A DNA stretch of 64,000 nucleotides from Malacoraja senta. Lineage: Eukaryota. Made by a program: the position numbers and the translations under genes. Location of the stretch: NCBI GenBank assembly GCA_038087875.1, contig JAXLNO010005687.1, positions 62,001-126,000 on the forward strand, written 5' to 3'. The notes under the pieces were generated by a model. It did not search any database and had not been told where the DNA came from. It saw nothing but the letters and a program-made list of their open reading frames with translations. This document shows positions 8,820 through 56,507 of this stretch, in pieces; within the stretch, counting starts at the first letter, position 1, and every line of letters begins with the position of its first letter.

Positions 8820-10365
8820 AAAATAGAAACATAGAAAACAGGTGCAGGAGTAGGCCATTCGGCCCTTCGAGCCTGCACCGCCATTCAATATGGTCATGGC
8901 TGATCATCCAACTCAGTATTCTGTACCTGCTTTCTCTCCATACCCCCTGATCCCTTTAGCCACAAGGGCCACATCTAACTCCCTCTTGAATATAGCCAAT
9001 GAACTGGCCTCAACTACCTTCTGTGGCAGAGAATTCCAGAGATTCACCACTCTCTGTGTGAAAAATGATTTCCTCATCTCCGTCCTAAAAGATTTCTCCC
9101 TTATCCTTTAACTGTGACCCCTTGTTCTGGACTTCCCCAACATCGGGAACAATCTTCCTGAATCTAGCCTGTCCAACCCCTTAAGAATTTTGTACGTTTC
9201 TATAAGATCCCCCCTCAATCTTCTAAATTCTAGCGAGTACAAACCGAGTCTATCCAGTCTTTCTTCATATGAAAGTCCTGACATCCCAGGAATCAGGCTG
9301 GTGAACCATCTCTGTACTCCCTCTATGGCAAGAATGTCTTTCCTCAGATTAGGAGACCAAAACTGTACGCAATACTCCAGGTGTGGTCTCACCAAGACCC
9401 TGCACAACTGCAGTAGAACCTCCCTGCTCCTATACTCAATTCCTTTTGCTATGAATGCTAACATACCATTCGCCTTCTTCACTGCCTGCTGCACCTGCAT
9501 GCCTACTTTTAATGACTGGTGTACCATGACACCCAGGTCTCATTGCACTCCCCTTTTCCTAATCGGCCACCATTCAGATAATAGTCGACTTTCCTGTTTT
9601 TGCCACCAAAGTGGATAACCTCACATCCACATTATACTGCATCTGCCATGCATTTGCCCACTCACCCAGCCTATCCAAGTCACCTTGCAGCCTCCGAGCA
9701 TCCTCCTCACAGCTAACACTGCCCCCCAGCTTCGTGTCATCTGCAAACTTGGAGATGTTGCATTCAATTCCCTCGTCCAAATCATTAATATATATCGTAA
9801 ATAGCTGGGGTCCCAGCACTGAGCCTTGCGGTACCCCACTAGTCACTGCCTGCCATTGTGAAAAGGACCCGTTTACTCCTACTCTTTGCTTCCTGTCTGC
9901 CAGCCAGTTCTCTATCCACATCGATACTGAACCCCCAATGCCGTGTGCTTTAAGTTTGTATACTAATCTCTTATATGGGACCTTGTCGAAAGCCTTCTGA
10001 AAGTCCAGATATAACACATCCACTGGTTCTCCCTTATCCACTCTACTAGTTACATCCTCGAAAAATTCTATAAGATTCGTCAGACATGATTTACCTTTCA
10101 TAAATCCATGCTGACTTTGTCCAATGATTTCACCACTTTCCAAATGTGCTGCTATCCCATCTTTAATAACTGATTCTAGCAGTTTCCCCACTACCGACGT
10201 TAGACTAACTGGTCTGCAATTCACCGTTTTCTCTCTCCCTCCCTTTTTAAAAAGTGGGGTTACATTAGCTACCCTCCAATCCTCAGGAACTACTCCACAA
10301 TCTAAAGTTTTGAAAAATTATCACAAATGCATCCACTATTTCTGGGGCTACTTCCTTAAGTACAT
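8820..10365 (-). mobile_element. 5'-truncated CR1 LINE (RT domain and 3' tail), frameshifted
   Basis: ORFs 9574-10224 ([42 protein letters not shown]) and 9108-9527, plus the (catagaaa)n tail at ~8820. Confidence 0.92.
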
Positions 10366-12560: not shown

Positions 12561-14106
12561 AAAATCATGCTTCAAACACGATGAAGATGTGTTTTCAATT
12601 TAAATTTGGGAATTTGCCTGCAGAAAGATGGTGCAATGACACCTCTTTCATTTCACATGTTGACATTTGCATCTGCATCCAAGATCAAAAAGTCGAATAT
12701 TCCCCCTTTTTGACTGTCTTAACACCTGTCACAGGCTTGGTCTGATGCCCTTGAATGTTCGACCAATAGTGGTGTAAGCAGAGCATTTTTGAAAATGGAT
12801 TTGAAGTGCCTCCAGGACACCAATTGCTGGAACATGGATAGCTGACGTTTCAAGTCGTGACCCTTCTAACCTCTCCACAATACATGGCCTTGCTGTTCTC
12901 AATGCTATTTCCGTATGGTGTTTAACACAGAAAAAATCTGCCATTAACTGAGGGAGGAGAGAGAATAGTAATGAGTAGGCGGTACAAATGAATTTCAAAA
13001 GACTGCTGGCTTTGGCAATATAGATATTAATATTTTACACAAGTTGTCGGTTTAACATTAACATGTATCAAAATTGATCACCTTTAGAGGCACTTCTTGT
13101 TTTTGACGGAAAGCCCACTGTTGTCTTTAGTTCCAGACAAGGATAGATTATCCTGTGGTCCTGAAATCATTGTTAAGATGATGTGCTCAGCTGCTTATGA
13201 TGTACTGTGATGCTTCATAGGAAACAGAGCAATCATCAAATGGATTAAAGCTTACCTCGGTAGCTGATTTTTTTTTTGCACTAGCATTATAGTTATTAAG
13301 TCATTGATTTTTTAAAAATCATTTACAGGCCGTTAAACTGCTGCAAGTAAAAAATCATCATTCTCTTGTTGGTACATATAACAATTAAACAATTGTGAAT
13401 TGATTCTGCTGGCAATGCACTAAGTCTCTTCATACTCGTGTTTAGACTTTAGCATGGGAACAGGCCTTTCGGCCTACCGAGTCCGTGCCGGGCAGCCCTC
13501 ACCCCATACATTAGCACTATCCTACACATTAGGGACCATTTACAATTTACAGAAGCCAATTAACCTACAAACCTCTACATCTTTGGAGTGTGGGAGGAAA
13601 CTGGGGCACTCGGAGAAAACCAATGGAGTCACACGATGCACAAGCCGGTATAGAAACATAGAAAATAGGTGCAGGAGTAGGCCATCCGGCCCTTTGAGCC
13701 AGCACTACCATTCAATGTGATCATGGCTGATCATCCACAATCAGTACCCCGTTCCTGCCTTCTCCCCATATCTCTTGATTCCGCTAGCCCTAAGAGCTCT
13801 ATCTAACTTTCTTTTGAATGCATCCAGTGAATCGGCCTCCACTGCCTTCTGAGGCAGAGAATTCCACGAATTCACAACTCTCTGCGTGAAAAGGTTTTTC
13901 CTCATCTCAGTTCTAAATGGCCTAACCCTTATTCTTAAACTGTTACAGAAGGATGTAAAAGTAATTTTGTTTTAACATTGGTGGTTTTTGTTTAGTTTAG
14001 AGATACATCATGGATCAGGTCCTTTGGCCCCCGAATCTGTGCCGATTGCCCAACGATCGCCCATTAACACTAGTTCTAAGTTAACCCACTTTCTCATCCA
14101 CTTCCT

Positions 14107-18147: not shown

Positions 18148-18354
18148 NNNNNNNNNNNNNNNNNNNNNNNNNNNNNNNNNNNNNNNNNNNNNNNNNNNNN
18201 NNNNNNNNNNNNNNNNNNNNNNNNNNNNNNNNNNNNNNNNNNNNNNNNNNNNNNNNNNNNNNNNNNNNNNNNNNNNNNNNNNNNNNNNNNNNNNNNNNNN
18301 NNNNNNNNNNNNNNNNNNNNNNNNNNNNNNNNNNNNNNNNNNNNNNNNNNNNNN
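18148..18354. other. Assembly gap (207 N)
   Basis: Run of N characters. Confidence 1.
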
Positions 18355-19095: not shown

Positions 19096-20514
19096 ATGAG
19101 CCCCTCCCCCCCACCCCCCATCTGCTCGGTGTGCGGGCTGAGCTTCGAGGGGCTGCGCTTTGATGGAGGACCACATGAGGGGGCACAACAAGGAGAAGCG
19201 TTATGAGTGCGACGTGTGTGGCAAGGCCTGGCAGTACCCGAGCCGGCTGGAGATCCACCGGCGGGTTCACACGGGAGAACGCCCCTTCGACTGCTCCGAC
19301 TGCGGCAAGAGCTTCAAGTCGCCGCCGGAACTGAAGATGCACAGGCGCCTGCACACCGGGGAACGACCCTACACCTGCAGCGACTGCGGCAAGGTCTTCA
19401 CCCGCTCCAGCAACCTGCTGTCCCACCAGCGCACCTACACTGGCGAGCGCCCCTACACCTGCAGCGACTGCGGCAAGGGCTTCACCCGCTCCAGCAACCT
19501 GCTGTCCCACCAGCGCTCCCACACAGGCGAGCGCCCCTACACCTGCACCCAGTGCGGCAAAGGCTTCACCCACTCCAGCATCCTGCTGGTGCACCAGCGC
19601 ACCCACACCGGCGAGCGTCCCTACACCTGCGCCCAGTGTGGCAAGGGCTTCACTCACTCCAGAAGCCTGCAGGTGCACCAGCGCACCCACACCGGCGAGC
19701 GCCCCCTACACCTGTACCCAGTGCGGCAAGGGCTTCATCCAGTCTGGCAACCTGCTGTCCCACCAGCGCACCCACACCGGCGAGCGCCCCTACACCTGTA
19801 CCCAGTGCGGCAAGGGCTTCACCCGCTCCTGCACCCTGCTGTCCCACCAGTGCACCCACACCGGCGAGCGCCCCTACACCTGCGCCCAGTGCGGCAAGGG
19901 CTTCACCCAGTCCGGTCACCTGCTGTTCCATCAGCGCACCCACACTGGTGAGCGCCCCTACACCTGCACCCAGTGCGGCAAGGGCTTCACCCGCTCCACC
20001 TATCATCTGTCCCACCAGCGGGTGCACGCCGGCGACGGTCCCATCCCCAGCCCGGTGTATGGAGAGCGCTTTGCCATGGCCTCCCACCCCCTGTCTTACC
20101 AGCGCGTGCACAAAAGTGGCCAGCCCTACGACTGCCCGTACTGCGGTGAGGAGTTTGACAGCTCGCGGGGGTTGCGGCAGCACCAGCGGACCCACGCCGG
20201 CGAGCAGCTGCTCCCACTGTAACAAGAGAGCACGGGGGCTGCGGGAGCACCAGCGGATACACACCGGCGAGACACCCTATGTGTGCGCTGAGTGTGGCAA
20301 GGGTTTCACCAGCATGTCCAGCCTGTGGCAGCACCGGCGTACCCACAGCGGTGAGCGTCCCTTCCCCTGCCCGTCCTGTGGAAAGGGCTTCACCCGACTT
20401 GACCACCTGCTGGAGCAACGGCGAGTCCACACCGGTCAGCACCCCTTCACCTACCCGCTCTGTGGCAATGCCTTTGCCCACTCCTCCAGCCTGCTTGCAC
20501 ACCGTTACTTTTAA
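19096..20514 (+). pseudogene. Multi-finger C2H2 zinc-finger gene with three frameshifts (pseudogene or consensus errors)
   Basis: Strong acceptor (ttcccctcctgcag, AG 19024-25) and ATG at 19096. There are 17 finger units with TGERP linkers spread across three frames. Shifts occur at ~19159 (extra T), 19702-06 (extra C) and ~20208 (deletion). At least five fingers lack a Cys/His ligand or are truncated. AATAAA at 20567. Confidence 0.85.
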
Positions 20515-30600: not shown

Positions 30601-32719
30601 TACGAACTTATCTCCTATGACGTATTATAGTTATTCATTCCACCTCTTTTTCTTTTTTGATATTGTAATTCTTCTTTCTCTCTTTTCTTTCTTCTTTCTC
30701 TCTATTTTTCTTTTTCTATCTATATAAAAAAAAAACACTAGAAGCAGAATAACTGACAATTGACAAATTTAATAATGTATGAGTGATTGATGTATATGAA
30801 AAGTTTTTTCTTCTATTATAATATGTTACTCTACATTGTAATATGTTTGCTTCTAATAAAAATTTATATCACAAAAAAAAAAATGTTTATCTGATAGCAC
30901 AGATGGCGCTGCAAGCTACTATGGCCAGTATAATGGTTTACAAAGTAAAATTGCTGATGTGGCTGATCAACATGTTCATATACAATACAATACAATACGG
31001 TTTTATTCGTCACATTGCACATAAAGTGCAAGTGAAATGGTGCTATGCCCATGTCTTGAATTTGGTGATAACTGAAACAACAAATGTTGTGAGCCTGCAG
31101 TTTCTTTTTTCAATTTGCTCCAGAATAGAGCAACTTTTGTGAAAGCATCATACAAGAGAATGGCTGTATGGATAGAAGTTGTTGGAAAACATCTAGGATA
31201 AGAAAAAAATGAAACGATTAAAGCTATTGGTGAGACCAGATGGTCAGGAAAATCCAATGCAGCAACAACTATATTTGGAAGTTTTGATGATGCCGCTGCC
31301 AGTACTTTCGTAAATCTATTGACATGATTATCAATGATACAAGATTCAGAAAAGTTTGATGCAAAAACAAAACATGAAGCAAATGTTTTACTTCAAAGTC
31401 TTCTAAAGTTTGAAACCATATTGACAGCATTTATTTACTTGTATATATTTGAAACTACAACCCCGTTATCAAGTTATCTACAGACAAGTGGGTTAGATAT
31501 GTTTACTGCATGGAGTTTGGTAGATTCAGCTACAACAAAGTTGAAGGAACAGACAAGAACATTTAATAACGTTCACAGCAAGGCTTTGGAATTTGTAAAG
31601 AAATGTAATGACAGGATTTCACAGATGAATATGGATGAAAATCAAACATTGGAAATTATTGCGTTGAAACAGCATTGCCAGTTAAGAGGCAGAGGAAGAA
31701 GAAAATAATGGCAGATGAGCTTATTGATGATAAAAAAAAATCCTCAGATTCTCTAGCTGATTTTTGAGTAAATGTGTTTAACCCAATAATGGATCGCATT
31801 GTCCAGTCACTAGAATCACGCTTTGTACAACACAAACAGTTGTATAAAGATTTGTCCTGCTTGGACCCAGCAAAGTTTAAAACTATTGCAGAGAAGGGCC
31901 TTGAAGATGAAGCATTGGAAGGTATTATTAAGCTGTTTCCACAAATCAGCAAAGATCAAGTAATATTGGAATTGTTTTCTTTTGCTTCAAACTTTGATGT
32001 ATTAAAGTTGCTTAATGATGGTGAGAATATGGATTCCAGTTGCAACAATTGTAAAATGTGCAGCACTTTCCCATCGAGTGTACTAAACATTCTGGCATCC
32101 AACAGACTTCATGACAAGGCATATGATAACCTTTATCAACTTTATAAAGTCATCTGCACACTATCAGTTACTCAAGTCCAATGTGAGAGGACATTTTCAA
32201 AGCTAAAGATCATAAAGACAAGGTTAAGAAATTCGCTGTCTGAGGAGAATTTGGAATCATACATGTTGCTAACCATTGAAAAGGAATTGTTAGATGAATT
32301 GGATGCAGAAGCAATTATTGGCAGATTCGCACAATCATCTAGCGAACACAAACGATTGCTCTTAATATAGTGGACTGCATGCAATGCTCTATTGTGCTTT
32401 TCAACTATCTGTTAATGTGTAAATTGTGCAGTAAATTATTTTAAAATATCAACCAATTACTTAAAATTTAAAAAAAAAAAAATTATAACATTCTATATTT
32501 ACATTCGGTATCTACTGCCAGTAATATGTACAGTACATGTACACTGTAATTACTAAGAACCATTTTTTTCACAAAAATTTTAAATTGTACCCTTTTTTCC
32601 ATATGTATTTTTTGAAAATATTATTTATTCGTTATGAAAATTAAATGATAGCATTGTAGTTGTGGGTGGGCCCCCTTTGTCTCCTGGCAACCAATATTTT
32701 TAGACCCAGTCCGCCACTG
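27664..32719 (+). mobile_element. Full-length but decayed hAT DNA transposon (ZMYM1-like/Tip100-type transposase)
   Basis: 14-bp TIRs (cagtggcggactgg) and a perfect 8-bp TSD CTTGCGGC (27656-63, 32720-27). Transposase remnants include DSTDGAAS, WCYAHVLNL, ETRW and the dimerization domain CERTFSKLKIIKTRLRNSL (31774-32370). Confidence 0.93.
28877..30878 (+). mobile_element. 5'-truncated L1-clade LINE inserted in the hAT transposase
   Basis: ORF2 C-terminal pieces (FGQFSGYRINWNKSE; HRLHYS...CDKC...HTF) and poly(A). A 15-bp TSD AAAAATGTTTATCTG lies at 28862-76 and 30879-93. Confidence 0.9.
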
Positions 32720-40693: not shown

Positions 40694-40745
40694 ATGCTTC
40701 TTTTTACCTTACTGAACACTTACGGTGTGGCCACTGTCTCCTCTG
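40694..40745 (+). CDS. MHC class I exon 1 (leader peptide MLLFTLLNTYGVATVSS)
   Basis: ATG at 40694, a hydrophobic 17-mer and the donor G|GTAAGC. Phase 1 joins alpha1 as GAT (Asp). It sits downstream of the SXY-like module. Confidence 0.75.
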
Positions 40746-43700
40746 GTAAGCAATACTGCTTCAACCTGTGAACTTTGAGGAAACAACAAAACTGATTATA
40801 TTTACTGTTGCACAGTGCCTGCGTTTGCCCTGGGTTCATTGTCTTGGATGTATTAATTGAATGATTGAATTGAATGTATTAATAATTTTGGGTAACGGTC
40901 TTTCCTTAGTTGTAAAGGCTCCTGTGGGAAGTTATATATACTATGGTTACCTTGGCAATCCATTGAACAGAAGAACTGAATACATGTAAATAATGAACAT
41001 AGAACATAGTACAATACAGCACAGGAGCAGGTCCTTCAGTCCTTCAGTCTGAAGAAGGGTCTCGACCCAAAACGTCACCCGTTCCTTTTCTCCAGAGATG
41101 CTGCCTGACCCGCTGTTACCTCAGCATTTTGTCTACCTTCGGCCCACAATGTCTGTGCCGAACAAACTAAACTAATCTCCTCTACCTGTATGTGATCTGT
41201 ATCCGGCCATTCCCTGCCTATCTATGTACCTATCTAAAAGCCTCTGAAATGTAACTGTTATATCTGCCACCATCACCACAACCACCACTGGCAGCGCGTT
41301 ACAGATGTCCACCACCCTCCACATAAAACAACTTGCTCCGCTCATCTCCTTTGAACATTGCTTCTCCAACCTTAAAGTGATGTTCTCTGGTCTTCAACAT
41401 TTCCACCCTGGGAAAAAGGTTCTGGCTGTCCACTCTGTCTGTGCCTCTCACCATGTTGTGCACTTTCATCAGGTCTCCCTTCAACCTCCAGTATACAAGA
41501 GAAAACAATCCATGTTTGTCCAATCTGTCCTTGCACTAATGCCTCAGACAGAATTCAGGTGATGTGCACTTTCAATAAAGAAGTGACTTCTGCATTAGTA
41601 GGTGTTCCACCTCTCCAAGATTTCCTCAGCTGGTGTTAGACACCCACATGATGGTAAAATTCAGCCTGCATTAAATGACCAATCAATGTTGTGTTAATGT
41701 TGTTGCCATCTTGTTGTTTGTTGCATGCTTCCTGTCCTGCAGACCCTATCCATTACCCCATCACCACTTCCCCAGAAGACGATAATGAGATTTAAGAAGC
41801 TTGAGGATAGGCACGTGGATATGCAGGGAATTGAGGGATATGAATCATCTACAAGCATGAAGAGTTTAGTTGAACTTGACATCATGATCGGCACAGACAT
41901 TGTGGCCGAACTCCAGCCCATTACACCCTTAATGAACAAAAATCTATCAATCTCAATCTGGAAATTTTCAAGCGGGCAAGATGTTCAACAGATTACAGAA
42001 TCGAGAACCAGAGGACATAGGTTTAAATTGAGGGGGGAAAGATTTAATGGGAATCTGATGAGCAATTTCTTCCCACACAATGGTACCTTTCTAACTATTC
42101 TGACATTCGTCAAGGCTTGGAGATTACAAACCTACTCGTCCTGAAAGTTTCATCCCATTGTTATCAAATGAAAGTAAATATAATGGTGTTAAAGAAGGAA
42201 CTGCAGATGCTGGAAAATCGAAGGTACACAAAAATGCTGGAGAAACTCAGCGGGTGCAGCAGCATCTATGGAGCGAAGGAAATAGGCAACGTTTCGGGCC
42301 GAAACCATATAATGGTGATGGCCATGTTGAAATAATAACATATAAAACAAAAATCCTCGGCTGTGGAGTGTTTTGGGAAGCCACATGGATTTTATCGTTA
42401 CTGTATTCCACTCTTAGCCGTCTTATGTTTCTCCTGGTAACACTGAAACAGACACTTGTAACTCTGCCCTCGGGGCCCCTTCTCACTTCACTTAAACACA
42501 TGAACTTTGACACTGTCTGGTGTGCTGCATGTAATCTTTATCACAGAACAAATACTGCTTATGCATGTGGAAACAAGAAACTGCACATGCTGGTTAATAC
42601 ACATAAAATACTGGAGTAATTCAGCAGGTCAGGCAGTATGTCTGGAGAACATGGTTAGGTGATGTTTCAGTTGACACAAGTGTAGGAAGGAAGTGCAGAT
42701 GTGTAAGAAGGAACTGCAGAAGCTGATTTAAACCGAAGATAGACAATAAAGCTGGAGTAACTCAGCGGCACAGGCAGCATCCCTAGAGAGAAGGTATGGG
42801 TGACGTTTCGGGTCGAGACCCTTCTTCTGACTGCTGATGCAGATGCTGGTTTACACCGAAGATAGATACAAAAGGCTGGAGTAACTCAGCAAGTCAGGCA
42901 GCATCGCTGGAGAAAAGGAATAGGTGGAGTTTCAGGTCAAGACACTGCATCAGACAGAGTCGGGGGTGCATATATTTCATTGTACTTTGTCATATCTCTC
43001 GGTTCTCTGTCCCCTGACTCTCATTCTGAAGAAGGGTCTCGACACGAAACGTCACCTTTTCCTTTTCTCCGGAGATGCTGCCTGACCCACTGAGTTACTC
43101 CAGTATTTTGTGTCGAGTTTCAATTTAGGCCCTGTTTATCTCAGTCTCCACCACCCCCCCCCCCCCCCCCATCTCTATGAGCTGTGTTGCAGCTGCCTAT
43201 GAGGACCTGGACTCAATCCTGATCTCTTACAACCTGGCTTTTTTTTCCCCCTGCAAACGTGTGTTTGCTATGGTTATTCCAGTTTCCCCGCACGTCCCCA
43301 AAATGCCGGGCTGAAAGGTAAATTGGCCAGTGTGAATTGGTCATGCATATGTATTAGAATTGGTGGAGGGGATGAGGGAGGTGTTAATGGGAGATTGGCA
43401 AATATTAAAAGGGTTAGCGTACCACAGGTATAAATAGGTGTTTGATGGTCACCACGAACTTGGTGGGCTAAAGGGCCTTTTATGTGCTGTACCCAGTGGA
43501 CATAAGTTTAAGATGAGGGGGGAATGATTTAATAGGAACCTGAGGCATAGCATTGTTACACAAAGGGTGGTGGGTGTACTGAATGAACTGCCGGAGAAGG
43601 TAGTTCAGGCGCGTACTATCACGACATTTAAGAATCATTTAATCAGGTACATGGATAGGATAGGCTTATAAGGATATGGGCCTCAGTCAGCTGTAGAGCC

Positions 43701-44194
43701 CACATCAATGGATATTTCTCAGGTGGAGATTAACAGATTCTTGATCAGTATGGGTTTCAAGGGTTATGGGGTGCAGGCAGGAGAATGTGGTTGATAGGGA
43801 GAGATAGCTCAGCCATGATTGAATGGCCGATGGGCTGAATGGCCTAATTATTCTCCTAGAACTTATGTACTGATGAAATACAGGCAGTGTAGATGAGGCA
43901 TGTTGGTTGGTGTGGCAAGTTGAGCCATAGGCCCTGATTCCCTGCTGTATGACTCTTTGACTTTACCTCTCTATGATTCTATAAAGTCTCCTTGACATTG
44001 TCCAGTTTCTTAATATAATAAAATATTCTTCAAATTTTGGAATATTGTAACTAGTAGAACCTATCGACATGATAGACAATAATAGATCTTTGAAGATGGG
44101 AAACAATCCAGTAGGATCATTCAATACCTCGACCATAATTGGTGGAGTAGGTATCAGAGCCCATCATGCCAACTCTTGAAGAAGGCTCAGTGGT

Positions 44195-44490
44195 GCAGCG
44201 GTAGACTTACTCGATTACAGCACCACAGACCCAGGTTGGATCCTGATTACGGATGCTGTCTGTACGGAGTTTGTCCATTCTCCCCATTACCGTGTGGGTT
44301 TTTCCCGAGATGTTCGGATTTTTCCCACATTCCAAAGACGTATAGTTTTGTAGGTTAATTGGCTTGGTCTAGAATGTAAATTGTCCCTAGTGTGTGTAGG
44401 ATAGTGTTATTGTGTGGGGGTTGCTGGTCAGTGTGGACTCGCACGAAGGGCCTGTTTCCATGCTATATCTCTAAGCTAAAAACTAAACTA
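44195..44490 (+). mobile_element. HE1-type V-SINE in MHC intron 1
   Basis: Decayed A/B boxes, V core and CTAAA tail. Confidence 0.7.
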
Positions 44491-44682
44491 AAGGCTCCTG
44501 ACCCAAATTGTCACCTGATCATTGATGCTGCCTGCCCCACTGAGTTCATCCAGCACTTGCATCTGCAGGTCCTTGTGACTCCCTTATTCAAAGTTATTGT
44601 ATTGTTATCAGTTTTAGCATTAATAACTTAGTTATTTTCAGTGAATGATACAATCATACTTATTTTTGTTAATGCATTGCAG

Positions 44683-44943
44683 ATTTACACCATCTTGCAT
44701 TTTACTACCTGTTGAACCATGGATTGAATGAGCTGCCTGAGTACAGTATGGTAGCAATGCTGGATGACGTCCAGATAGCATATTTTGACAGCACACTAGA
44801 GCGGGCTGTTCCCAGACAGCGATGGATGGCCCAGTCTTTCCCGCAGGATCACTGGGATTCAATGGCCATCACAGTTGCAGGTTTTCATGGGATTGTCAGA
44901 GGAAATGCTGAGATAGTCTACCAACAGCAACATGGTATCTCGA
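44683..44943 (+). CDS. MHC class I exon 2 (alpha1 domain, 261 nt)
   Basis: Acceptor ttgcag and donor GA|GTAAGT, phase 1-1. Sequence: DLHHLAFYYLLNHGLNELPEYSMVAMLDDVQIAYFDSTLERAVPRQRWMAQSFPQDHWDSMAITVAGFHGIVRGNAEIVYQQQHGIS. It retains H3, PEY, DD.Q, FDS, PR..W and W60. Confidence 0.93.
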
Positions 44944-45084
44944 GTAAGTGTCGTGAGCGGACCTGGGGTAGACACTCAGTGATGACACAGATGGATTTTG
45001 TTTTAGTTTTATTGTTGACACATGATTCTCTGATACACTTTTTTTGCGTTAGTCAATCACATCAAAGAAAACTATTCATAAATA

Positions 45085-45610
45085 CAATCAAACCAAACTC
45101 GTACAATAGGTAGAGCAAAGAGTGCAGAATGTAGTTCTCAGCATTGTAATGTACCAGTGCCAGAGACAAAGTCCAGTGTCTACAATGGGGTTGAGGTGAA
45201 CCCTAGCATAAGGGAGGACTGTTCAGAAACCTGATAACATAGGGGAGGAAACAGTTACTGAGTCTGGTGGTGCACGCTTTAATGCTTACGTACCTTCTGC
45301 AGGAAGAAGGAGTGACCAGAACGGGACAAATCTTTGATTATGTTGTCTGCTTTCCTGAACCAGTTGAAATACAGATGGATTCACTGGTGGGGAATCATGT
45401 TTGTGTGATCGACTGTGCTACATCTCCACCTCTCTGCAATTTCCAGCGGTCTTGGGCAGAACTCTTTCCAAACTAAGTTGTGATGCAACCTGTCAGTATG
45501 CTTTCTATGGCACATTTGTAGAAGTTTGTAAGAGTCATTGGAGATGCCGCATTTCCTTAGTCTCCTGAGGCAGTAGGGGAACCAGAAACTCTCAACCTTT
45601 TTCACTTCAG
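45085..45610 (-). mobile_element. Rex1/Babar-type LINE 3' fragment in MHC intron 2
   Basis: The minus strand shows LRRLRKCG and, after a shift, ESILTGCITTWFG...LQR motifs. Confidence 0.6.
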
Positions 45611-46687
45611 CACCATTGATGCTGTTTCAGACATTTACTCCATAACATTTTGATAGAGACACGGCCCATCGTCTATATTTAATGTGTCCTAACTGCTGAA
45701 CACACAGTCATAACAGTTGGCTGGTGATAGTCTCTTTATGGGTTAAGCATTTGATATTCAACACCAGTAATAAGTGGATGGATTGGATCATCTGTTTTGT
45801 TGGGCTGGAATGAGGGAGAAACCATTAGTTTATTTATAGCCTGATCATCTAGAGATGGGATCTTGATTTAAGCTGGTTGATGGTGACTATGAGGTATTCC
45901 CTCAGTAATAATATTGTGTTAATCCAGCATCCCCTCAATATTGGCAACAATCCTCAGAGGGTGTAGCAATCCCACACAGTGCAACAGCCTTGATGTACTT
46001 CCCATCTGCATTGCCTTAACCTTCAGACTGACCTGTTGGCTCTGTAGCATTGCCCATCTGACAATGCACTTCTTCCTCTGTTCTTTATGTACGACAGTGC
46101 AGAATCTGAGTTCCACCCTTCTGACACAGCAGAACTCCTTTAGTGTTACATCCGCAACAGTAAAGCTCCCCCCCATAACACTTGAGGTTAGTCCATGCCC
46201 TCAGTATATAGACCATGGGTCATTGAGTCACACATCATGGAAACCGGCCCTTCTGCTCACTGAATCCACATTGATCATCCATTGTGCTAAGATGGAGTCA
46301 CAGCAAACTGCAGATGCTGCCAATCTGAATTTAAAACAAACAGGAGGAACTCAACGAGTCAGGCAGCATGCTGTGGAAAAATGGACAGAAAACATATGAG
46401 ACCAGGACCATTTAGAGTGATGGGGTAGAGTGGAGAAAGCTGGAAAAGAAAAGTAGTCTGTGTAGGATAGTGTTAATATGCGGGGACCACTGGTCGGTGC
46501 GGACTCGGTGGGCTGAAGGGCCTGTTTCCGCGCTGTATCTCTGAGCTAAACCTGCTCCTGTGCTGTACAGCTCCATGTTGTGTTCTGTTATGCCTGTTTG
46601 TACCATGCTGAGAACTGATTTGTAAATTGCCTCTCCCTTCCATCCACTCTCCCCAACACAAATCCTCCACCCCTACCTCAGCCCCAG

Positions 46688-46963
46688 CTGTTTGCTTTGT
46701 GCAGGGTTTCTGCGGCTGTGAAGTGGACAGTGACAATTCCACTGATGGGTTTGTCAGACTGGGTTATGATGGGGAGGATGCCTGTGCTTTTGACAAGGAC
46801 AGAATGCGCTGGATTGCACTACGTCCAGATTTCCAGATGCTAGCAGATCGGTGGAACGTCAACACCTTCATGAACAAGTATTTCAAAGATCTCCTGGAGA
46901 AGGACTGTGTGAAATGGCTGCTGATATATCTGGAGTGTGGACAAGAAGCACTACAGAGGAGAG
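46688..46963 (+). CDS. MHC class I exon 3 (alpha2 domain, 276 nt)
   Basis: Acceptor ccccag (an in-frame alternative AG lies 6 nt upstream) and donor AG|GTATAC, phase 1-1. It has the canonical exon length, GCE (C101), GYDGED, W147 and C164-VKW...Y171. Confidence 0.93.
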
Positions 46964-47064
46964 GTATACGACGTAGGCACTCTGACTGATGGGCCAGAGG
47001 ATATCCTCTGGATAGATCAGGTGGGAAATATCATGCACTTCAGGCTGTCACTTGAGTAATTATT

Positions 47065-47353
47065 TAGTTTAGTTTAGAGATACAGCGCGGAAACCCACCG
47101 AGACCGCACCGAGCAGCCATGCCCGCACACTAACACTATCCTACACACACTAGGGACAATTTGCATTTATACCAATCCAATTAACCTACAAATTTGTACG
47201 TCTTTCGAGTGTGAGGGGAAACCGAAGATCTCGGATAAAACCCACGCAGGTCACAGGGAGAACGTACAAACTCTGTAAAGACAAGCACCCGTAGTTAGTA
47301 ACAAACCCAGGTCTCTGGCGCTGTAAGGCAGTAGCTCGACCGCTTCGCCACCC
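47065..47353 (-). mobile_element. HE1-type V-SINE
   Basis: Same family, reverse orientation. Confidence 0.75.
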
Positions 47354-48167
47354 TGTTCTACAACGTGGGTATCAGTAAATTGTCTGGCAACGTGCCTCTT
47401 AGATGGAACCAGTGGGTAGGAAGTGCAAGTGAAAGATAAATACTGTACCAGTGTCCTTTATCCACAGTCATATAGATATTCAGGAAATGGAGGAATATGT
47501 ATCTTGGTCTTATGTTTAGCACCGACCTTGTGGCCTGAAGGGTCTGTTGCTGAACTGATCAGAAACCCAATCAGATTCTCTATTTGCCTCTATTACTCCT
47601 TGGGATGGTGACATTCAATTTCCAACAGTTCTCTATTTGAAGAACTTCTTCCTCCCATTCCCTCTTGGAATATTTAGTGTTATTATTCAGCAGAGATTCA
47701 TGAACAGGTAGAAGCAATCATGTCTACAGTATCAATCCCAATGGTGAGTTATACTCCTCCATTGGGCCTGCATTCCCCTTTCATCTGTGCTGTCAGTTAA
47801 AGTCTGGAGCTAAGATAAGGAGCATGTCAGTGATATTAAAGCTAAATGTTTTGTTGTTTTGCCAGAAATGCAAAATGAAAAGAGAAAAGGCTGTAAACTT
47901 TGTGCAAGATAGAACTGCAGATGATGGTTTACACTGAAGATAGAAGATGTTGGAGTAACTCAGTGGGTCAGATAGCATCTCTGGGCATTCCTTCTCTCCA
48001 GAATGCTGCCTGACCTGCTGAGTTATTCCAGCATTTTGGGTCTAGGCTGAAAACTTAGTTCAGCCAGAGAAAAAACTCTGATTGGGAAAGTGGTGAGTTG
48101 CAGTGATCTTACAATTGAAGGCTTTTGTTCATGTCTTCACTGATTCTGACTCTTCTTACACTTGCAG

Positions 48168-48440
48168 AAACCCCTGAGGTGTTTATTGGGATTAAACGTG
48201 ATGGGTCGCAATCACTGAGACTCTCCTGCCTTGTCACAGGCTTCTAGCCACGGGCCATCGATGTAACGTGGCTGAGAGGTGGTGAGGGGGTCCATGAGTC
48301 TGAATCCAGTGATCTGTTGCCCAATTGGGATGGGACTTACCAGCTGAAGAATACAATTCAACTGAATAGAGAAGATGTGGTAAAATTCTCCTGTTACATC
48401 GAACATGCAACTCTGCTGCAGGGAGTCAATGTTCCACAGG
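48168..48440 (+). CDS. MHC class I exon 4 (alpha3 Ig-C1 domain, 273 nt) with an in-frame TAG
   Basis: Acceptor cttgcag and donor G|GTAAGT, phase 1-1. Sequence: ETPEVF...LSCLVTGF*PRAIDVTW...LLPNWDGTYQ...FSCYIEHATL. Confidence 0.93.
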
Positions 48441-48534
48441 GTAAGTGGCAAGTCAATGAGGCTGATCACTTGAGACCATAAACCTCCTGGACTGCGATAA
48501 CAGTCTCAACTCACACTCTTAACTAAGCTGTGGA

Positions 48535-49170
48535 TTTAGACTTTAGGCTTTAGAGATATGCTGCAGATACAGGCCCCTCAGCTCACTGAGTCCTCGCTGA
48601 ATAGTGATCAACCCATACATTTACACTAACCTACACAGTACGGACAATTTACAATTTTACCTAAGCCAAGTAACCTACAAACCTGTATGTCTTTGTAGTG
48701 TGGGAGGAAACCCACGCAGTCACAGGGAGAACATACAATGTCCTTGCAGACAGCACCTGTAGTCAGGATCAAACCCAGGTCTCTGGTGCAGTAAGGCAGC
48801 AGCTCTACCGCTACGCCACTGTGCCACCCATTATTAATTTGTGGTTATCTAATTGCTCATAATTATTGATTGTCAATGGAATGTGGTTTTAGTTTAAGAG
48901 ATACAGCGCAGAAACCGGCCCTTCAGCCCACCGAGTCTGCGTCAACCAGCGATCCCTGCACACTTACATTATCTTACTTATTAGGGGACAATTTACAATT
49001 ATACCAAGCCAATTAACCTACAAACCTGTATGTCTTTGGACTGAGTGAGGAAACCGGAGATCCAGGCAAAACCCACGCAAGTCCCGGGGAGAAGGTACAA
49101 AACTCTGTACAGACGGGACCCGTAGTCAGAATTGAACCGGGTCTCTGGCGCTGTAAGGCAGCAGTTCCAC
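48535..49170 (-). mobile_element. Two adjacent HE1-type V-SINEs (~48535-48829 and ~48887-49170)
   Basis: Two consecutive reverse-oriented copies with core and tail. Confidence 0.75.
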
Positions 49171-50314
49171 CGAGTGGGCAAAGCAGAGCCAAATGGAATA
49201 CAGTGTAGCAAGTGTCTGGTTTTACATTTTGGCAGTCGGAATAAAGACATAGACTATTTTCTAAATGGGGAGAGAATTGAGAAACCTGAGCTACAAAGTG
49301 GGAGTACTAGTGCAGGATTCCCAAATAGTTCATTTGCAGATTGAGTCAGTGGTAAGTAAGGCAAATGCAATGCCAGCATTCATTTCGGGGGGCGTAGAAT
49401 ATAAAAACAATGATATAATGCTGAGGATTTATCGGGCACTGGTGAAGACACATTTGGAATATTGTGAGCAGTTTTGGGCTCCATATTAGAAAGGATGTGC
49501 TGGCTTTGGAGAGGGTCGAGAGGATGTATGTCCTGGGGATGATTGATTTAACGTATGAGGAGTGTTTGAAGTCTCTGTGCCTGTGCTCATGGGATTTAGA
49601 AGGATGAGGTGGGAATCTCATTGAAACCTACCAGCAGGGCCGGATTTAGATGAAGAGAGGCCCTAAGCTGTTCCACTTGTGAGGCCCCCCCCCAATCCCC
49701 CACCCCCACGACCAGAGGAAGATGGTCCACCAGATTGACACCGATTTGCAGCCGAGCGTGGCCAATGAGATAAGGGGCTGGAAAGCTGGGCTTTATTTAT
49801 TTATTTATTGCCACTGCTAGTGTCGAGTTATTGGCTTAAAACACTATTATTCTGAAATGGAGGGCAAGGAAAATTACTGAAGTGTTGTTTAGAGACTACA
49901 GTGCGTTGTGACAGCATATGTAAGAAAGGCCTATGACAGTGTCAAAAATATTATACACCTTGCAGGGCTCTCACTTAATTTTTTTTCTCTGTTGTCAGCC
50001 GGGCAACCTTGGTAGCTTTTTAAGTTGCCAAATGACAGTTTAGGTGGTTATTTAAGATGGCTTGCATGACACGTGCGATAATGTGCTCGGACGACCAGTC
50101 AGAATTATGCTCAATGAAGCATTCACATATTATTTCTGCTTCAAATAAAGCCACAAATTAAACATATTCACCAATCAGGACATGATATATACCACAATGA
50201 CATGCAGCACAATTATAATACTGTATCTTAACTCTTTTTACACGTTGCAATGAATGCAATTTCTATTATTTCTTTCCACTTCCAAAAAAAAATGTGGTTG
50301 GATTATTCAGCGTA

Positions 50315-50775
50315 TGATCAACCTCGGTGAGACCAAGTGCAGGCTTGGCGATCGCTTCGCACAACACCTCCACTCAGTTCGCAATAACCAACCTGATCTC
50401 CCGGTGGCTCAGCACTTCAACTCCCCCTCCCATTCCGAATCTGACCTTTCTGTCCTGGGCCTCCTCCATGGCCAGAGTGAGGCCCACCGCATATTGGAGG
50501 GGCAGCACCTCATATTTGCTTGGGTAGTTTACACCCCAGCGCTATGCACATAGGCTTCTCTAATTTCAGGTAGTCCTTGCTTTCTCCCTCCTTCCCCTCC
50601 CATTCCCAGCTCTCCCACAGCCTACTGTCTCCGTCTCTTCCTTTATTTTTCATGTCATTCCCCCCCCCCCCCGACATCAATCTGAAGAAGGGTCTCGACC
50701 CGAAACATCGTCTATTCCTTCGCTCCACAGGTGCTGCCTCACCCGCTGATTTTCTACAGCTTTTTTGTCTACCAA
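50315..50775 (+). mobile_element. Penelope-like element 3' part (GIY-YIG fragment plus terminal repeat with hammerhead-like motif)
   Basis: GETKCRLGDRFAQH...PVAQHFNSPSHS...QHLIF, followed by CTGAAGAAGGGTCTCGACCCGAAAC at 50682. Confidence 0.8.
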
Positions 50776-51354
50776 TGGGATCCCACAACTGGCCACATCT
50801 TCCCATCTCCTCCCCTGTTGGCTTTCCATAGAGACCGCTCCCTCCGTAACTCCCTGGTCAATTCGTCCCTTCCCACTCAAACCACCCCCTCTCCTGGCAC
50901 TTTCCATTGCAACTGCAGGAAATGCTACACTTGGCGTTTTAATTAAGTTCAAGACAATGGGGCTGTACATTGGCCATAAGGTTGCTGCCTAAAAGTGCCA
51001 GAGACCTGGAATTGATCCTGAATATGGGTGTTGTCTGTTTGAAGTTTGCTCCTTTTCACTTTGATCGCATGGGTTTTCTTCGGGTGCTCTTGTTTCCTTC
51101 CACATTCCAAAGATGTGCAGGAACCTATTTCAGAACCAACCCTAAACGTAATATTTCCCTTTTGTCCAGAGATTCTGTCTGACCTGTTGAGTTACTCCAG
51201 CTTTGTGTGTCTATCTTCAGTTTAAACCAGCATCTGCAGTTCCTTCCTACACACACGATACTATACGATAGAACTTTATTAATCCCAGGAGGGAAATTGT
51301 GTGTGTGTGCGTGTGGGTATATATACTATGCACACACACACACACACATATATA

Positions 51355-51925
51355 TATACAATACAATTACAATACAATTTTATTTGTCTTTTGGACAAAT
51401 TTGTCATTTGGACCCCGTTGAGGTCCAAACGAAATGTCGTTTCTGCAGCCATACATTACAAAACTAAGAAGACCCGAGACACAACACAATTTACACATAC
51501 ATCCATCACAGCGCTGTGATGGAAGGCAAAAAAACGTATCTCTCCACTGCACTCCCCCCCCCCACCCCCCCGATGTCAGAGTCAAAGTGAAAGCCCCCGG
51601 CGGGCGATGGTGATTATCCCACGGCCATTAAAGCCATGCCGGTTAATGCAGGGTCGCGCACCGCGTCTTGGTGTTAGAGCCCCGGCGCGCGCTCGCAAAG
51701 TCCGGCGGCCATTCCAAGCCGCGCGGGGCGGTGATGTAAAGCCCCCCTCCAGGTGCTCTTCAACCCCGCAACTCGGGCGGGAGAAGTCGCCGCTGCGGAT
51801 GCCCTGAAAAGCGGTGTCCCACCAGGGGACCCACGGGCTTCCGGTGTTGCCGTCCGCCAGACCCGCGGTTGTAGCCTCCGAATCTCCGGGGGTCGGGTAG
51901 CAGCAGCGATTGTCTCCACCACAGC
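51355..51925 (-). mobile_element. GC-rich non-coding element with a LINE-type AATAAA/(TTGTA)n tail
   Basis: CpG-rich body; the minus-strand tail is gacaaataaaattgtattgtaattgtat. Confidence 0.45.
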
Positions 51926-54295
51926 TATAAATATACACCGTTTTGTTTTCTCGTTTATAACATTGTTTACAGAGTACTATGTTTACATATTCTGTTGTGC
52001 TGCTGCAAGTAAGGATTTCATTGTTCTAACTGGGACGTGAGAGAATAAACTCTTGACTCTTGACTTACTTCGCTAATGTGTGGGAAAGAACTAGTGTACG
52101 GGTGATCAATAGTCGGCGTGGACTCGGAGGGCTGAAGGGCCTGTTTCCACGCTGTATCTTCAAATTAAGCTAAAGACACTAAAACCAGAGGGAGTCTAAA
52201 GAAGTGTTTCTACCCGAAACGTCACCCAATTTCTTCTATCCTGAGTTGCTGGCTGCTCCATGGAGTTCCCCCGCACAATTAAAGCATGGAATAGTCTTCA
52301 CCCTACCATAGTTACCCAACCAGACGCAACTAAATTTAAGGTACCTCTTTTTTCCCCAAGAACCCTTTTTTGCTTAAGTCCAAGTCAAGAATCAAGAGAG
52401 TTTTATTGTCATGTGTCCCAGATAGGACAATGAAATTCTTGCTTGCTGCAGCACAACATAATATGTGAACATAATACAGAACAGGAGATAAAAGTTCAGT
52501 GTGTTTATATACCATAGACCATATATATACACAATAAATAAACAGATAAAATGCAATAGGCTGTTATTGTTCAGCCCTCTACCACCTCCAGTTTAAATTC
52601 CTTTTAGAATATTTATGGAGGATCAGGAAACCAGAAGCGAGAGTTACTCCAGGGAGATACTCCTGATCCAGGGTCAGGGAGTGATTCTGTGTTAGTTTTC
52701 AGCGGTTGCGGTGAGGCAGCAATGGCGGACAAATCTCCCACAATTCAAAGCGAGGGAGAAAGTGCCCAGCGCCGACCAGTTGCCGTGGCAGTGCGCATGC
52801 GCAGGGCGGCCGATGACATGCGGGCTGTGGTTGTGCGCATGTGCAGGGGAGGACGTGCTGGCCGTAGCAGTGTGCATGTGCAAGGCGGCCGGCCGTGCCG
52901 GCGGATGAGGAGCGAGCGGAGAACGGAGACCCGGACACGGAGAGTGACAGACGGAGATAGAGATAGAGAGGGGGGCCGCCCCGCCCAGAGTTGAACGGCT
53001 GGTGTCCTGCCTTGGCCGGAGGCCCCCTATATTTCAGGGCCCCAGGCTTCAGCCTATGAAGCCTAGTGGTAAATCCGGCTCTGCGAGCCCCTCCTAGATC
53101 TCCAGGCCCTAAACTGAAGCTTGTCCATCTTATATGTAAATCCGGCCCTGCCTACCAGATAATGAAATGCCTGGTTAGTTGATGGGAAAGGAAGTTTTCA
53201 GTAATGGGAGAGTCTAGCACAGCCTCACAATAAAAATACCTACCTTCAATATGGAGATGAGGAGGAATCTCTTTAGTCACAGGGTGGTGAATCTGTGGAA
53301 TTCATTGATACAAACAGCTGTGTGGGTCAAGTCATTGCATATTTTTCAAGCAGAGATTGATAGGTTCTTGATGAGTACGGGTGACAAAGGTTACAGGGAG
53401 AAGGCTAGAGAATGGGATTTAGCGGTAAAAAATCGATCTGCTATGACTGAATGGTGGAGTAGACTCAATGGACTTGAAAGGCATAATTCCGCTCCAATAT
53501 CTTATGGTCAAAATTATTCTTATGTCACCCTTAACTCACCCATCCAAATGTAGGAACAGTGGAAGCAAGATAGGCTGATCCTGGACAAGGTCTCTTATCT
53601 TCTTCCTTGGGCATCTAGCTAATTTTCTGATAGTAGTTAGTTACACAAAAGACCAACAGTGGTGCCATATTATCAGGCTGAAGTAGCAGCACCTGTTCTG
53701 TAGCTGACTTATTTGTTCCAGACAAGACCTCTGCAAAGATCTTCACACCAGGGCCAAGCTGACATGGTTAAGATTGCTGGTCAGTACAAATAGACAGTAG
53801 TGTTAATGTCTGTGTGTGCCTATGTGTGTGTGTGTGGGCTCATGTGTGTGAGACAGTGAGGGGGAGAGAGAGAGAAAGAGAGAGCATGTGTATGTGAGAA
53901 AATTAAACTCAGATATCATTGAAATATCAGCAAAGATTAAAACCTTTGAAGTTTTATCAACTATAAATGGGTTCACTTTTATTTGCTATAATAACAATCA
54001 TCAACATAAGAAAATGGCCTTGTTGACCTCTACACTGTAAATAGTCATATATTTCTGACGTACTTGATTCTTTAAATTCTTAATTAAATGCTGCAGATAA
54101 AATCTCAATACCTCAATGCTAATATGAACTTAATGATTTTTCATTGATCATTTTAAGCACATCCATCCTCTGTATAAATACTTAAATCTAAAACGTTATT
54201 ACTTTTTAATTAGATATGAACAGTGCTACTTTAATTTAGATAATAAAATCATTACAATGTTGTTATTGATCACTAAATGTTTAAAATGCACTATA

Positions 54296-56273
54296 CAGTG
54301 GCTTGCAAAAGTTTTCATACCCCTTGAACTTTTCCACATTTTGTCACGTTACAACCACAAACGTAAATGTATTTTATTGGGATTTTATGTGATAGACCAA
54401 CACAAAGTGGTGCATAATTGTGAAGTGGAAGGAAAATGATACATGGTTTTCAAATTTTGTTACAAATAAAAAACTGAAAAGTGTCGCGTGCAAAAGTATT
54501 CAGCCCCCCTGAGTCAATACTTTGTAGAACCACCTTTCGCTGCAATTACAGCTGCAAGTCTTTTGGGGTATATCTCTACCAGCTTTGCACATCTAGAGAC
54601 TGAAATTTTTGCCCATTCTTCTTTGCAAAATAGCTCAAGCTCAGTCAGATTGGATGGAGAGCATCTGTGAACAGCAATTTTCAAGTCTTGCCAGAGATTC
54701 TCAATTGGATTTAGGTCTGGACTTTGACTGGGCCATTCTAACACATGAATACGCTTTGATCTAAACCATTCCATTGTAGCTCTGGCTGTATGTTTAGGGT
54801 CGTTGTCCTGCTGGAAGGTGAACTTCCGCCCCGGTCTCAAGTCTTTTGCAGACTCTAACAGGTTTTCTTCCAAGATTGCCCTGTATTTGGCTCCATCCAT
54901 CTTCCCCCATCAACTCTGACCAGCTTCCCTGTCCCTGCTGAAGAAAAGCATCCCCACAGCATAATGCTGCCACCACCATGTTTCACAGTGGGGATGGTGT
55001 GTTCAGGGTGATGTGCAGTGTTAGGTTTCCGCCACACATAGCATTTTGCATTTAGGCCAAAAACTTCAATTTTGGTCTCATCTGACCAGAGCACCTTCCT
55101 CCACATGTTTGCTGTGTCCCCCACATGGCTTGTGGCAAACTGCAAACGGGACTTCTTATGGGCTTTTATCAACAATGGCTTTCTTCTTGCCACTCTTCCA
55201 TAAAGGCCCGATTTGTGGAGTGCACGACTAATAGTTTTCCTGTGGACAGATTCTCCCACCTGAGCTGTGGATCTCTGCAGCTCCTGCAGAGTTACCATGG
55301 GCCTCTTGGCTGCTTCTCTGATCAATGCTCTCCTTGCCCGGCCTGTCAGTTTAGGTGGACGGCCATGTCTTGGTAGGTTTGCAGTTGTGCCATATTCTTT
55401 CCATGTTCGGATGATGGATTGAACAGTGCTCCGTGAGATGTTCAAAGCTTGGGATATTTATTTATAACCTAACCCTGTTTTAAACTTCTCCACAACTTTA
55501 TCCCTGACCTGTCTGGTGTGTTCCTTTGGCTTCATGATGTTGTTTGTTCACTAATGTTCTCTAACAAACCTCTGAGGCCTTCACAGAACAGCTGTATTTA
55601 TACTGAGATTAGATTAATAATAATAATAATAATAATGGATGGGATTTATATAGCGCCTTTCTAATACTCGGCGCTTTACATCGCATTATTCATTCACTCC
55701 TCAGTCACACTCGGTGGTGGTGAGCTACTTCTGTAGCCACAGCTGCCCTGGGGCAGACTGACGGAAGCGTGGCTGCTAATCTGCGCCTACGGCCCCTCCG
55801 ACCACCACCAATCACTCACACACATTCACACACATTCACACGCAGGCAAAGGTGGGTGAAGTGTCTTGCCCAAGGACACAACGACAGTATGCACTCCAAG
55901 CGGGATTCGAACCGGCTACCTTCCGGTTGCCAGCCGAACACTTAGCCCATTGCGCCATCTGTCGTCCCGAGATTACACACAAGTGGACTCTATTTACTAA
56001 TAAGGTGACTTCTGAAGGCAATTGGTTGCACTGGATTTTATTTAGGGGTATCAGAGTAAAGGGGGCTGAATATTTTCGCACGCGACACTTTTCAGTTTTT
56101 TATTTGTAAAAAAATTTGAAAACCATGTATAATTTTCCTTCCACTTCACAATTATGTGCCACTTTATGTTGGTCTATCACATAAAATCCCAATAAAATAC
56201 ATTTACGCTTGTGGTTGTAACGTGACAAAATGTGGAAAAGTTCAAGGGGTATGAATACTTTTGCAAGCCACTG
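54296..56273 (-). mobile_element. Tc1 (DD34E) transposon, IR/DR type, Passport-like; transposase inactivated
   Basis: ~213-bp TIRs (54296-54508, 56061-56273) with inner and outer direct repeats, and a TA TSD. ATG at 55535, TAA at codon 26 (55458-60), +2 frameshift at ~54903-08. WSDE, QQDND and NPIE motifs give exactly 34 residues between D and E. Confidence 0.95.
55617..55968 (-). mobile_element. tRNA-derived CORE-type SINE with an L2-like tail, nested in the Tc1
   Basis: A box TGGCGCAATGG, B box GGTTCGAATCC, core GTGTCCTTGGGCAAGACACTT and tail aaaggcgctatataaat...(tta)n. AGATTA is duplicated at 55611-16 and 55970-75. Confidence 0.85.
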
Positions 56274-56286
56274 TATATGCCAACAG

Positions 56287-56507
56287 AGAGGGCAGTGAAA
56301 GAAGATATGAAGATTAGGATCGTGACTGGAGCTGTAATTGTTCCTCTTATTCTCCTGGGGATCATCCTTGGAATTGGTTGCTGGAAGAAGAGGAAAAAGA
56401 GAAAACCTTTCAATGAACAGGTACCAGCTGACAACAGCAGAGACCAGGAGAGGACCATGAAGCACAATCAGCTTCCTTTGGGATGCAGAGGAGGTCTACC
56501 GGAATGA
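56287..56507 (+). CDS. MHC class I exon 5 (connecting peptide, transmembrane, cytoplasmic)
   Basis: Acceptor caacag, phase 1. ERAVKEDMKIR-IVTGAVIVPLILLGIILGIGCW-KKRKKRK is a TM helix with a basic stop-transfer. The exon may instead end at the donor CAG|GTACCA (56420). Confidence 0.8.

Follow-up and report, generated by a model that had tools for sequence, protein, structure and literature searches.

We analysed a 64,000-nucleotide stretch of the genome of the elasmobranch Malacoraja senta (GenBank assembly GCA_038087875.1, contig JAXLNO010005687.1, positions 62,001 to 126,000 of the forward strand; hereafter, the window), which contains a gene related to class I genes of the major histocompatibility complex (MHC). 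The gene lies on the + strand at 40694-56507 and has a five-exon MHC class I-like architecture. We consider it likely to be a copy of a nonclassical MHC class I lineage that is conserved in elasmobranchs and belongs with UFA and UGA. This lineage is denoted here LIN, a label that covers the set of orthologues named "MR1-like" in RefSeq together with the gene in the window. The parts of the gene are as follows, with residues in HLA-A2 numbering.

40694-40745, + strand: leader (signal peptide) exon; ATG, 17 codons and a phase-1 donor, G/GTAAGC; found by alignment to the little skate leader
44683-44943, + strand: alpha1 exon; 88 residues including split codons; F7, Y9, M24, H59, M63, V67, F70, V74 and Q84, without the N86 glycan site
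46682-46963, + strand: alpha2 exon; V95, Q96, G97, C99, C101, V114, L116, A123, L143, R146, W147, L159, C164 and Y171; alternative acceptor at 46688
46711-46719, + strand: C99-G100-C101 motif; C101 is the canonical disulfide cysteine and C99 an extra one on the groove floor
46735-46743, + strand: N-S-T sequon, located in the loop of the first alpha2 hairpin, read directly from the sequence
48168-48440, + strand: alpha3 (immunoglobulin C1-set) exon, interrupted by a stop; identified by translation and Pfam
48245-48247, + strand: premature TAG at the tyrosine of the GFYP motif, seen on comparison with the little skate copies and the orthologues
56287-56507, + strand: one exon that encodes the connecting peptide, the transmembrane segment and the cytoplasmic tail and ends in TGA; traced with the little skate orthologue as guide

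The hallmarks of the MHC class I superfamily are all present, namely, a platform followed by a C1-set domain, one domain per exon, phase-1 junctions and the cysteines C101 and C164. Pfam assigns MHC_I to both alpha1 (E 1.4e-5) and alpha2 (E 6e-16) and C1-set to alpha3, and the three exons have AG acceptors, GT donors and phase-1 junctions throughout. The leader and the last exon were located with the orthologue from the little skate (Leucoraja erinacea) as guide. All 17 leader residues match those of little skate, and the donor G joined to AT gives Asp, the first mature residue; shark leaders, compared by tblastn, match the same leader site in the little skate contig JAMYXN010000384.1 (100-151). 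The last exon is open in frame and has 3 codons fewer than its little skate counterpart. Spliced together, the frame comprises 362 codons, with the in-frame TAG as its sole defect. The start of alpha2 is probably at 46682 rather than at 46688, the acceptor that a strict HLA-length alignment implies, because the RefSeq models of skate, sawfish, manta and stingrays take the acceptor 6 nt upstream; this choice adds two residues at the alpha1/alpha2 junction and leaves the groove numbering unaffected. An earlier reading of the window from its letters (hereafter, the sequence-only reading) had placed the feature at 44683-46963; the two exons in that span are real, but it covers only alpha1, the intron and alpha2 of the gene. 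No paralogue was found inside the window when the exons of the gene itself and proteins of the UGA, UFA-like and LIN groups were used as queries, and a simple motif scan of the 600 bp upstream of the leader yielded CCAAT/ATTGG boxes only, with no match to an interferon-stimulated response element or to kappaB.

The closest orthologue of the window gene is the little skate protein XP_055486430, with 92% identity overall and 94% in alpha1. A word-indexed search with the little skate protein returned one close relative per species, at 54-72% identity, with the next matches at 36% or below. The species concerned are sawfish, manta, stingrays, sawshark, catsharks, zebra, epaulette and bamboo sharks, smooth-hound, basking shark and white shark. 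The exception is the sevengill shark (Heptranchias perlo), with a single cluster of 11 proteins; in this species, at least 11 near-identical LIN proteins are spread over several contigs and represent either a real expansion or uncollapsed haplotigs.

In a maximum likelihood tree of 52 whole-protein sequences, LIN is monophyletic (100/100), and its topology follows the split between rays and sharks. Its sister group is a clade of "F10 alpha chain-like" proteins of the UGA type (93/82), and the two are joined by a small UFA-like clade (83/81). The UGA-type and UFA-like clades, each with support of 100/100, are both separate from LIN, so that membership of LIN in UGA and membership in UFA were rejected. 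Domain-wise phylogeny, which the sequence-only reading had proposed as a check, gave trees for alpha1, alpha2 and alpha3 in which LIN is likewise monophyletic (99, 98 and 92, respectively), with no sign of domain shuffling across the three. Nesting within a lineage of known ligand had been named there as an outcome that would tell against a non-peptide lineage of its own; strictly taken, LIN lies inside neither UGA nor UFA. By these trees, LIN is a third member of the UFA/UGA group, sister to UGA yet clearly distinct from it. Since the LIN and UGA clades are reciprocally monophyletic, and each includes shark and ray members, their divergence predates the split between sharks and rays. Another clade of "F10 alpha chain-like" proteins, large, multicopy and confined to sharks, probably corresponds to a multicopy class Ib lineage that is already known; in its 14 sampled members, the C101-C164 pair is replaced (V101; L, Y, F or S at 164).

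Residues were numbered from the landmarks W60, C101, YDG118-120, W133, W147 and C164, and the numbering was checked by a MAFFT alignment with classical teleost U molecules. These controls carry the full classical set of terminus anchors (Y7, Y59, R84, F123, T143, K146, W147, Y159 and Y171). At the same positions, the window gene has F7, H59, Q84, A123, L143, R146, W147, L159 and Y171, that is, two of the nine classical residues, W147 and Y171, are kept. The seven replacements are fixed in the 16 LIN orthologues, in sharks and rays alike. The invariant terminus anchors of classical class I molecules are accordingly missing from the window gene and from all 16 orthologues. The other classical feature, polymorphism concentrated in the groove, is not apparent by the between-species proxy either: of all parts of the protein, the groove shows the highest conservation.

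What the sequence-only reading had said of individual residues is borne out. The substitutions that it listed (Y7F, Y59H, Y/R84Q, Y123A, T143L, K146R and Y159L, with W147 and Y171 kept) agree with both the landmark numbering and the alignment; the groove-facing residues Y9, M24, M63, V67, F70, V74, V95, G97, V114 and L116 are as it described them; and the numbering confirms the retention of Q96, G120 and D122, which contact beta2-microglobulin (beta2m). Its observation that the N86 site is lost and a new NST appears in alpha2 also stands, with H at position 86, no N-x-S/T nearby and the NST at 46735-46743. The motif DNSTDG around this sequon is conserved across LIN, and the sequon is a predicted N-glycan site, relocated from N86, which it replaces. 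The C101-C164 disulfide cysteines are retained along with the beta2m-contact residues. The broader claim of a nonclassical, non-peptide type of class I lineage is upheld as well; both the apolarity and the conservation of its groove are unusual. These residue features are not peculiar to the window, being invariant in the 16 shark and ray orthologues, all of which RefSeq calls "MR1-like".

Groove composition was compared over a set of 41 standard positions, with A, V, I, L, M, F, W and C counted as apolar.

LIN groove: apolar 66-67%, charged 5%, mean Kyte-Doolittle 1.26-1.35
UFA-like groove: apolar 58%, charged 7%, mean Kyte-Doolittle 0.94
UGA groove: apolar 50%, charged 13%, mean Kyte-Doolittle 0.44
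Classical teleost U groove: apolar 43%, charged 13%, mean Kyte-Doolittle -0.08

Judged by composition, the LIN groove is mainly hydrophobic, as in CD1. Small residues are fixed at four of its positions (G69, G76, G97 and A123), and the summed residue volume of the 41 positions is about 6100-6300 cubic angstroms in LIN versus about 6500 in classical fish class I molecules. Entropy within LIN is 0.37 in the groove, 0.66 in the rest of alpha1-alpha2 and 0.81 in alpha3, and 23 of the 41 groove positions are invariant. Identity between batoid and shark LIN proteins is 67.5% in alpha1, 72.4% in alpha2 and 57.4% in alpha3, the reverse of the classical pattern. The window gene has the same residue as little skate XP_055486430 at 41 of the 41 groove positions. 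One further residue sets the lineage apart: C99, at a groove-floor position, is present in the window and in 16 of the 16 orthologues, and absent from the other groups (F in UGA, L or W in the UFA-like clade, Y in teleost U); it has no invariant partner cysteine.

As a structural proxy for the window protein, we used the AlphaFold model of residues 1-290 of the little skate orthologue. The model has a predicted local distance difference test score of 89 and a normal two-helix platform, and it retrieves class I chains at Z 26-28. Against 9CH4, a structure titled "shark nonclassical MHC class I, UGA" (released 2026-03-18), it reaches Z 28.1, with a root-mean-square deviation of 1.8 Å over 267 residues and 39% identity; 9CH4 is also the best sequence match of LIN in the PDB (207 bits). 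The UFA-like clade, for its part, matches 8GM8, titled "shark nonclassical MHC class I, UFA" (released 2024-11-27), at 211 bits, and the model of one member of that clade retrieves 8GM8 by structure.

The kinship of LIN to these two molecules is evident at the level of residues and gene order. With UGA, LIN shares G69, F70, G76, G97, L116, A123, L159, L160 and D163 in the groove, and the two genes adjoin in little skate, where they encode consecutive RefSeq proteins of one contig. The differences are nonetheless substantial: overall identity is 37-40% (36-42% per domain), UGA has Y7, Y59, R84 and K146 where LIN has F7, H59, Q84 and R146, the LIN groove is 67% apolar versus 50% in UGA, and LIN alone has C99. 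UFA, which groups with LIN and UGA both when the tree is built from the whole protein (83/81) and when it is built from alpha2 (99), resembles LIN in its missing anchors, its hydrophobic groove and its mapped location in the same class Ib cluster (PMC10751288), but is much more divergent, with 19% identity in alpha2 and a different alpha2 length. UFA and UGA have been described as single- or low-copy, MHC-linked, CD1-like genes, and crystal and mass-spectrometry data, cited as a personal communication, suggest that they bind lipids like those of human CD1d (PMC12562908, a 2025 review).

The sequence-only reading had called the lineage possibly unassigned, a description that the databases make doubtful: a RefSeq orthologue exists in nearly every sequenced shark or ray, and the one from sawfish is marked MHC-Ib (PMC10751288). 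LIN is already in the databases and, probably, in the literature. The class Ib cluster between B2M/BRD2 and COL11A2/RXRB/HSD17B8 holds UDA, in single copy, the multicopy UEA, and UFA (Verissimo et al. 2023, PMC10751288), and the supplement of that paper marks the sawfish gene LOC127585976 as MHC-Ib in the B2M-COL11A2 cluster. In the interval from B2M/BRD2 to COL11A2/RXRB, LOC127585976 is the only "MR1-like" class Ib gene and directly precedes three "F10-like" class Ib genes; from the shared RefSeq name, we take it to encode the sawfish LIN protein.

No lineage name is attached to any of the database matches or cluster entries, which bear automatic RefSeq names only, and the PMC10751288 supplement says just "MHC-Ib". 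UDA is the best candidate name because LIN is single-copy, is neither UFA nor UGA and is not in the separate UBA cluster; with UFA and UGA fixed by PDB entries, UDA is the only single-copy lineage of the cluster left without an assigned sequence. LIN and UDA also agree in being single-copy in sawfish, catshark and white shark and in lying in the B2M-COL11A2 class Ib cluster. By this elimination, which sets LIN against the description of UDA rather than its reference sequence, we find it reasonably probable that LIN is UDA.

The window copy itself appears to be disabled. A single C>G change converts TAC to TAG at the GFYP tyrosine, where both little skate copies have TAC and 16 of the 16 orthologues have Tyr, and this is the only window-specific change at any LIN-invariant position. 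The protein would end early in alpha3, ahead of the membrane anchor, and the transcript is probably a target of nonsense-mediated decay, because 193 nt separate the stop from the last exon junction downstream. Since nothing else in the gene has decayed, the copy is, on the sequence at hand, a young pseudogene or a null allele. An origin as a long-dead pseudogene was rejected. Derived amino acid replacements, polarised with outgroups, are balanced between the window branch (11) and the little skate branch (10), no further defect is present, and the ratio of nonsynonymous to synonymous rates (omega) between window and little skate is 0.36 for alpha1-alpha2, with alpha3 and the tail at about 1, all from small counts. 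The synonymous divergence of the two genes (dS 0.075) equals their intron divergence (0.075).

Alternatively, the gene might be functional in the animal, the TAG being an error of assembly or base calling or marking a null allele that is rare but present on the haplotype sequenced. TAG aside, all exons are open and all splice sites canonical, the window branch shows no surplus of derived replacements (11 vs 10), and none of the 41 groove positions differs from the intact orthologue of little skate. However, substitution errors are rare in modern long-read assemblies, and copies of this gene do die in skates, as exemplified by the dead second copy in little skate (JAMYXN010000412.1), so that we consider a functional gene unlikely. 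That second little skate copy (JAMYXN010000412.1, 10001-14232) is a pseudogene without an alpha1 exon, with a stop in alpha2 and one alpha3 codon missing; the RefSeq protein built on it, XP_055486496.1, reads through intron sequence. The RefSeq model of the intact copy, XP_055486430.1 (JAMYXN010000384.1), is itself imperfect: it omits the leader exon, present about 9.85 kb upstream (100-151), and includes 12 residues of intron read-through after alpha2 (12984-13020). When correctly spliced, it is fully open.

What would the intact LIN protein bind? The best inference from the sequence and from the comparison with its relatives is a lipid-like, hydrophobic, non-peptide ligand, because the groove fits one conserved class of ligand and because of the kinship to UGA and UFA. 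The sequence-only reading had proposed a lipid or small-molecule ligand; its lipid half is reasonable on the same grounds, an apolar conserved groove and UGA/UFA kin, while an MR1-type metabolite is weighed below as a rival. In the scheme that we envisage, the intact protein would pair with beta2m at the cell surface, hold a hydrophobic, lipid-like ligand in its conserved, monomorphic groove and display it to T or natural killer (NK)-type cells, as proposed for UGA and UFA and known for CD1. Neither the window tail, which has no tyrosine at all, nor the orthologue tails contain a YxxPhi sorting motif, and because of this lack of a tyrosine motif, one would expect loading to occur along the secretory pathway or on the cell surface, not in lysosomes.

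The likeness to CD1 extends to the lost peptide anchors, the apolar groove, the monomorphic conserved platform and an alpha3 of the beta2m-type. The differences are that orthology is not demonstrable, with the single CD1 sequence of our set on a long branch; that the LIN tail is without the YxxPhi present in CD1b, CD1c and CD1d; that LIN is MHC-linked and mammalian CD1 is not; and that for LIN, lipid binding is what we infer. Several considerations weigh against a lipid-like ligand, or against parts of the case made above. For lipids in UGA and UFA, the source is a review that cites a personal communication, and the identity of LIN to UGA is just 37-40%; a hydrophobic groove closed on itself would be conserved too; and the endosomal motif missing from the LIN tail is typical of the lipid-sampling CD1b, CD1c and CD1d. 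In addition, the omega values come from few substitutions (7 synonymous and 10 nonsynonymous in alpha1-alpha2), and the pseudogene status hangs on one base in one assembly.

The same groove features can be read in other ways. The intact protein might have a narrow or closed, ligand-free groove and itself serve as a receptor or as a ligand, in the manner of FcRn, HFE, MIC and some NK-receptor ligands. Many anchor-less class I-like molecules are indeed empty, a greasy and invariant groove surface could reflect helix-helix packing, and the tail has no sorting motif. An empty groove nevertheless fits poorly with the small residues G69, G76, G97 and A123 fixed where classical molecules are bulky or with a groove residue volume below that of classical fish class I (about 6100-6300 vs 6500 cubic angstroms). 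Furthermore, the orthologue model fits both UGA and peptide-loaded chicken BF2 at 1.8-2.0 Å, no FcRn entry is among its best 50 structural matches, and the sister molecule UGA is reported to be lipid-loaded; we therefore give a ligand-free groove a modest chance at most. It is also conceivable that LIN presents peptides or lipopeptides by unconventional hydrophobic anchoring, the mode by which chicken YF1*7.1 and Mamu-B*098 hold acylated peptides. Structures of YF1*7.1 with N-acyl amino acids and with a myristoylated peptide rank with the best matches to the model (Z 26.6-26.9), and R146, W147, Y171, N77 and Q84 are left as possible polar contacts at the groove ends. Yet 7 of the 9 terminus anchors are gone, both end pockets are apolar (L5, F7 and L159 at one end; L116, A123 and L143 at the other), and near-invariance of the groove over the shark-ray split favours one class of ligand over diverse peptides, which makes this mode of presentation improbable.

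An MR1-style groove, binding a small metabolite, possibly covalently, rather than a lipid, is suggested by the RefSeq name that every orthologue bears, by the invariant extra cysteine at floor position 99, in the CGC motif, and by alpha2. Taken alone, the alpha2 exon (46690-46962) scores best in the PDB against mammalian MR1 (63 bits, gapless, about 40% identity) and lower against UGA (52 bits), and alpha1 shows the opposite preference. The domain trees still keep alpha2 with UGA and UFA despite the higher MR1 score, and by these comparisons, the "MR1-like" name reflects similarity in alpha2 only. The trees of alpha1 and of the whole protein, too, put LIN with UGA and UFA, among the shark lineages rather than outside them. 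The Schiff-base lysine of MR1 is K43; in the column that we take for this residue, the HMMER alignment of the little skate orthologue to MR1 has alanine, and the local sequence in the window is the same. Orthology to MR1 was rejected on the grounds of the missing K43 and of the grouping with UGA and UFA. MR1 and LIN are alike in the gapless alpha2 and in being conserved and monomorphic-looking, but the MR1 groove is aromatic-basic, whereas that of LIN is apolar, far more so than expected for ribityl-type ligands, and we deem an MR1-style metabolite very unlikely. There is a slim chance that C99 itself might be a reactive thiol used for covalent or redox-dependent ligand capture, a thiol counterpart of the lysine Schiff base of MR1. 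If so, LIN would add a third type, with a chemistry of its own, to the conserved non-peptide presenters, and one older than the divergence of sharks and rays. A lipid-like ligand held in the hydrophobic groove is the reading that we prefer.

The surroundings of the gene are rich in repeats. The last intron, 7.8 kb in the window versus 2.7 kb in little skate, contains a remnant of a Tc1/mariner transposase on the - strand (54858-55445; HTH_Tnp_Tc3_2, E 9e-25), and repeats resembling short interspersed elements fill the introns of the class I gene and the stretch just upstream of alpha1. Ordinary transposon debris farther upstream includes a reverse-transcriptase fragment on the - strand (9577-10224; RVT_1, E 5e-28) and a hAT dimerisation domain on the + strand (31774-32367; E 2e-9). 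A GC-rich stretch at 18-24 kb harbours a 435-aa open reading frame with C2H2 zinc fingers on the + strand (19207-20511; zf-H2C2_2, E 3e-22), which may belong, as one exon, to a zinc-finger gene lying upstream of the class I gene; a run of N occupies 18148-18354.

Among living vertebrates, the oldest to possess an MHC are the sharks and rays. What is seen in UFA and UGA suggests that the presentation of lipids may match that of peptides in age, and a third sister lineage, greasier and more conserved, would show that the non-peptide branch had diversified before sharks and rays separated. The window copy adds little to this picture, being disabled and part of a lineage for which annotation exists in related species and which the literature has already flagged (PMC10751288). 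The points of remaining interest are the ligand of the intact LIN protein and the role of Cys99. Represented by a single gene in most of the genomes seen, LIN is a clean target for ligand discovery and for the search for invariant T cells in cartilaginous fish.

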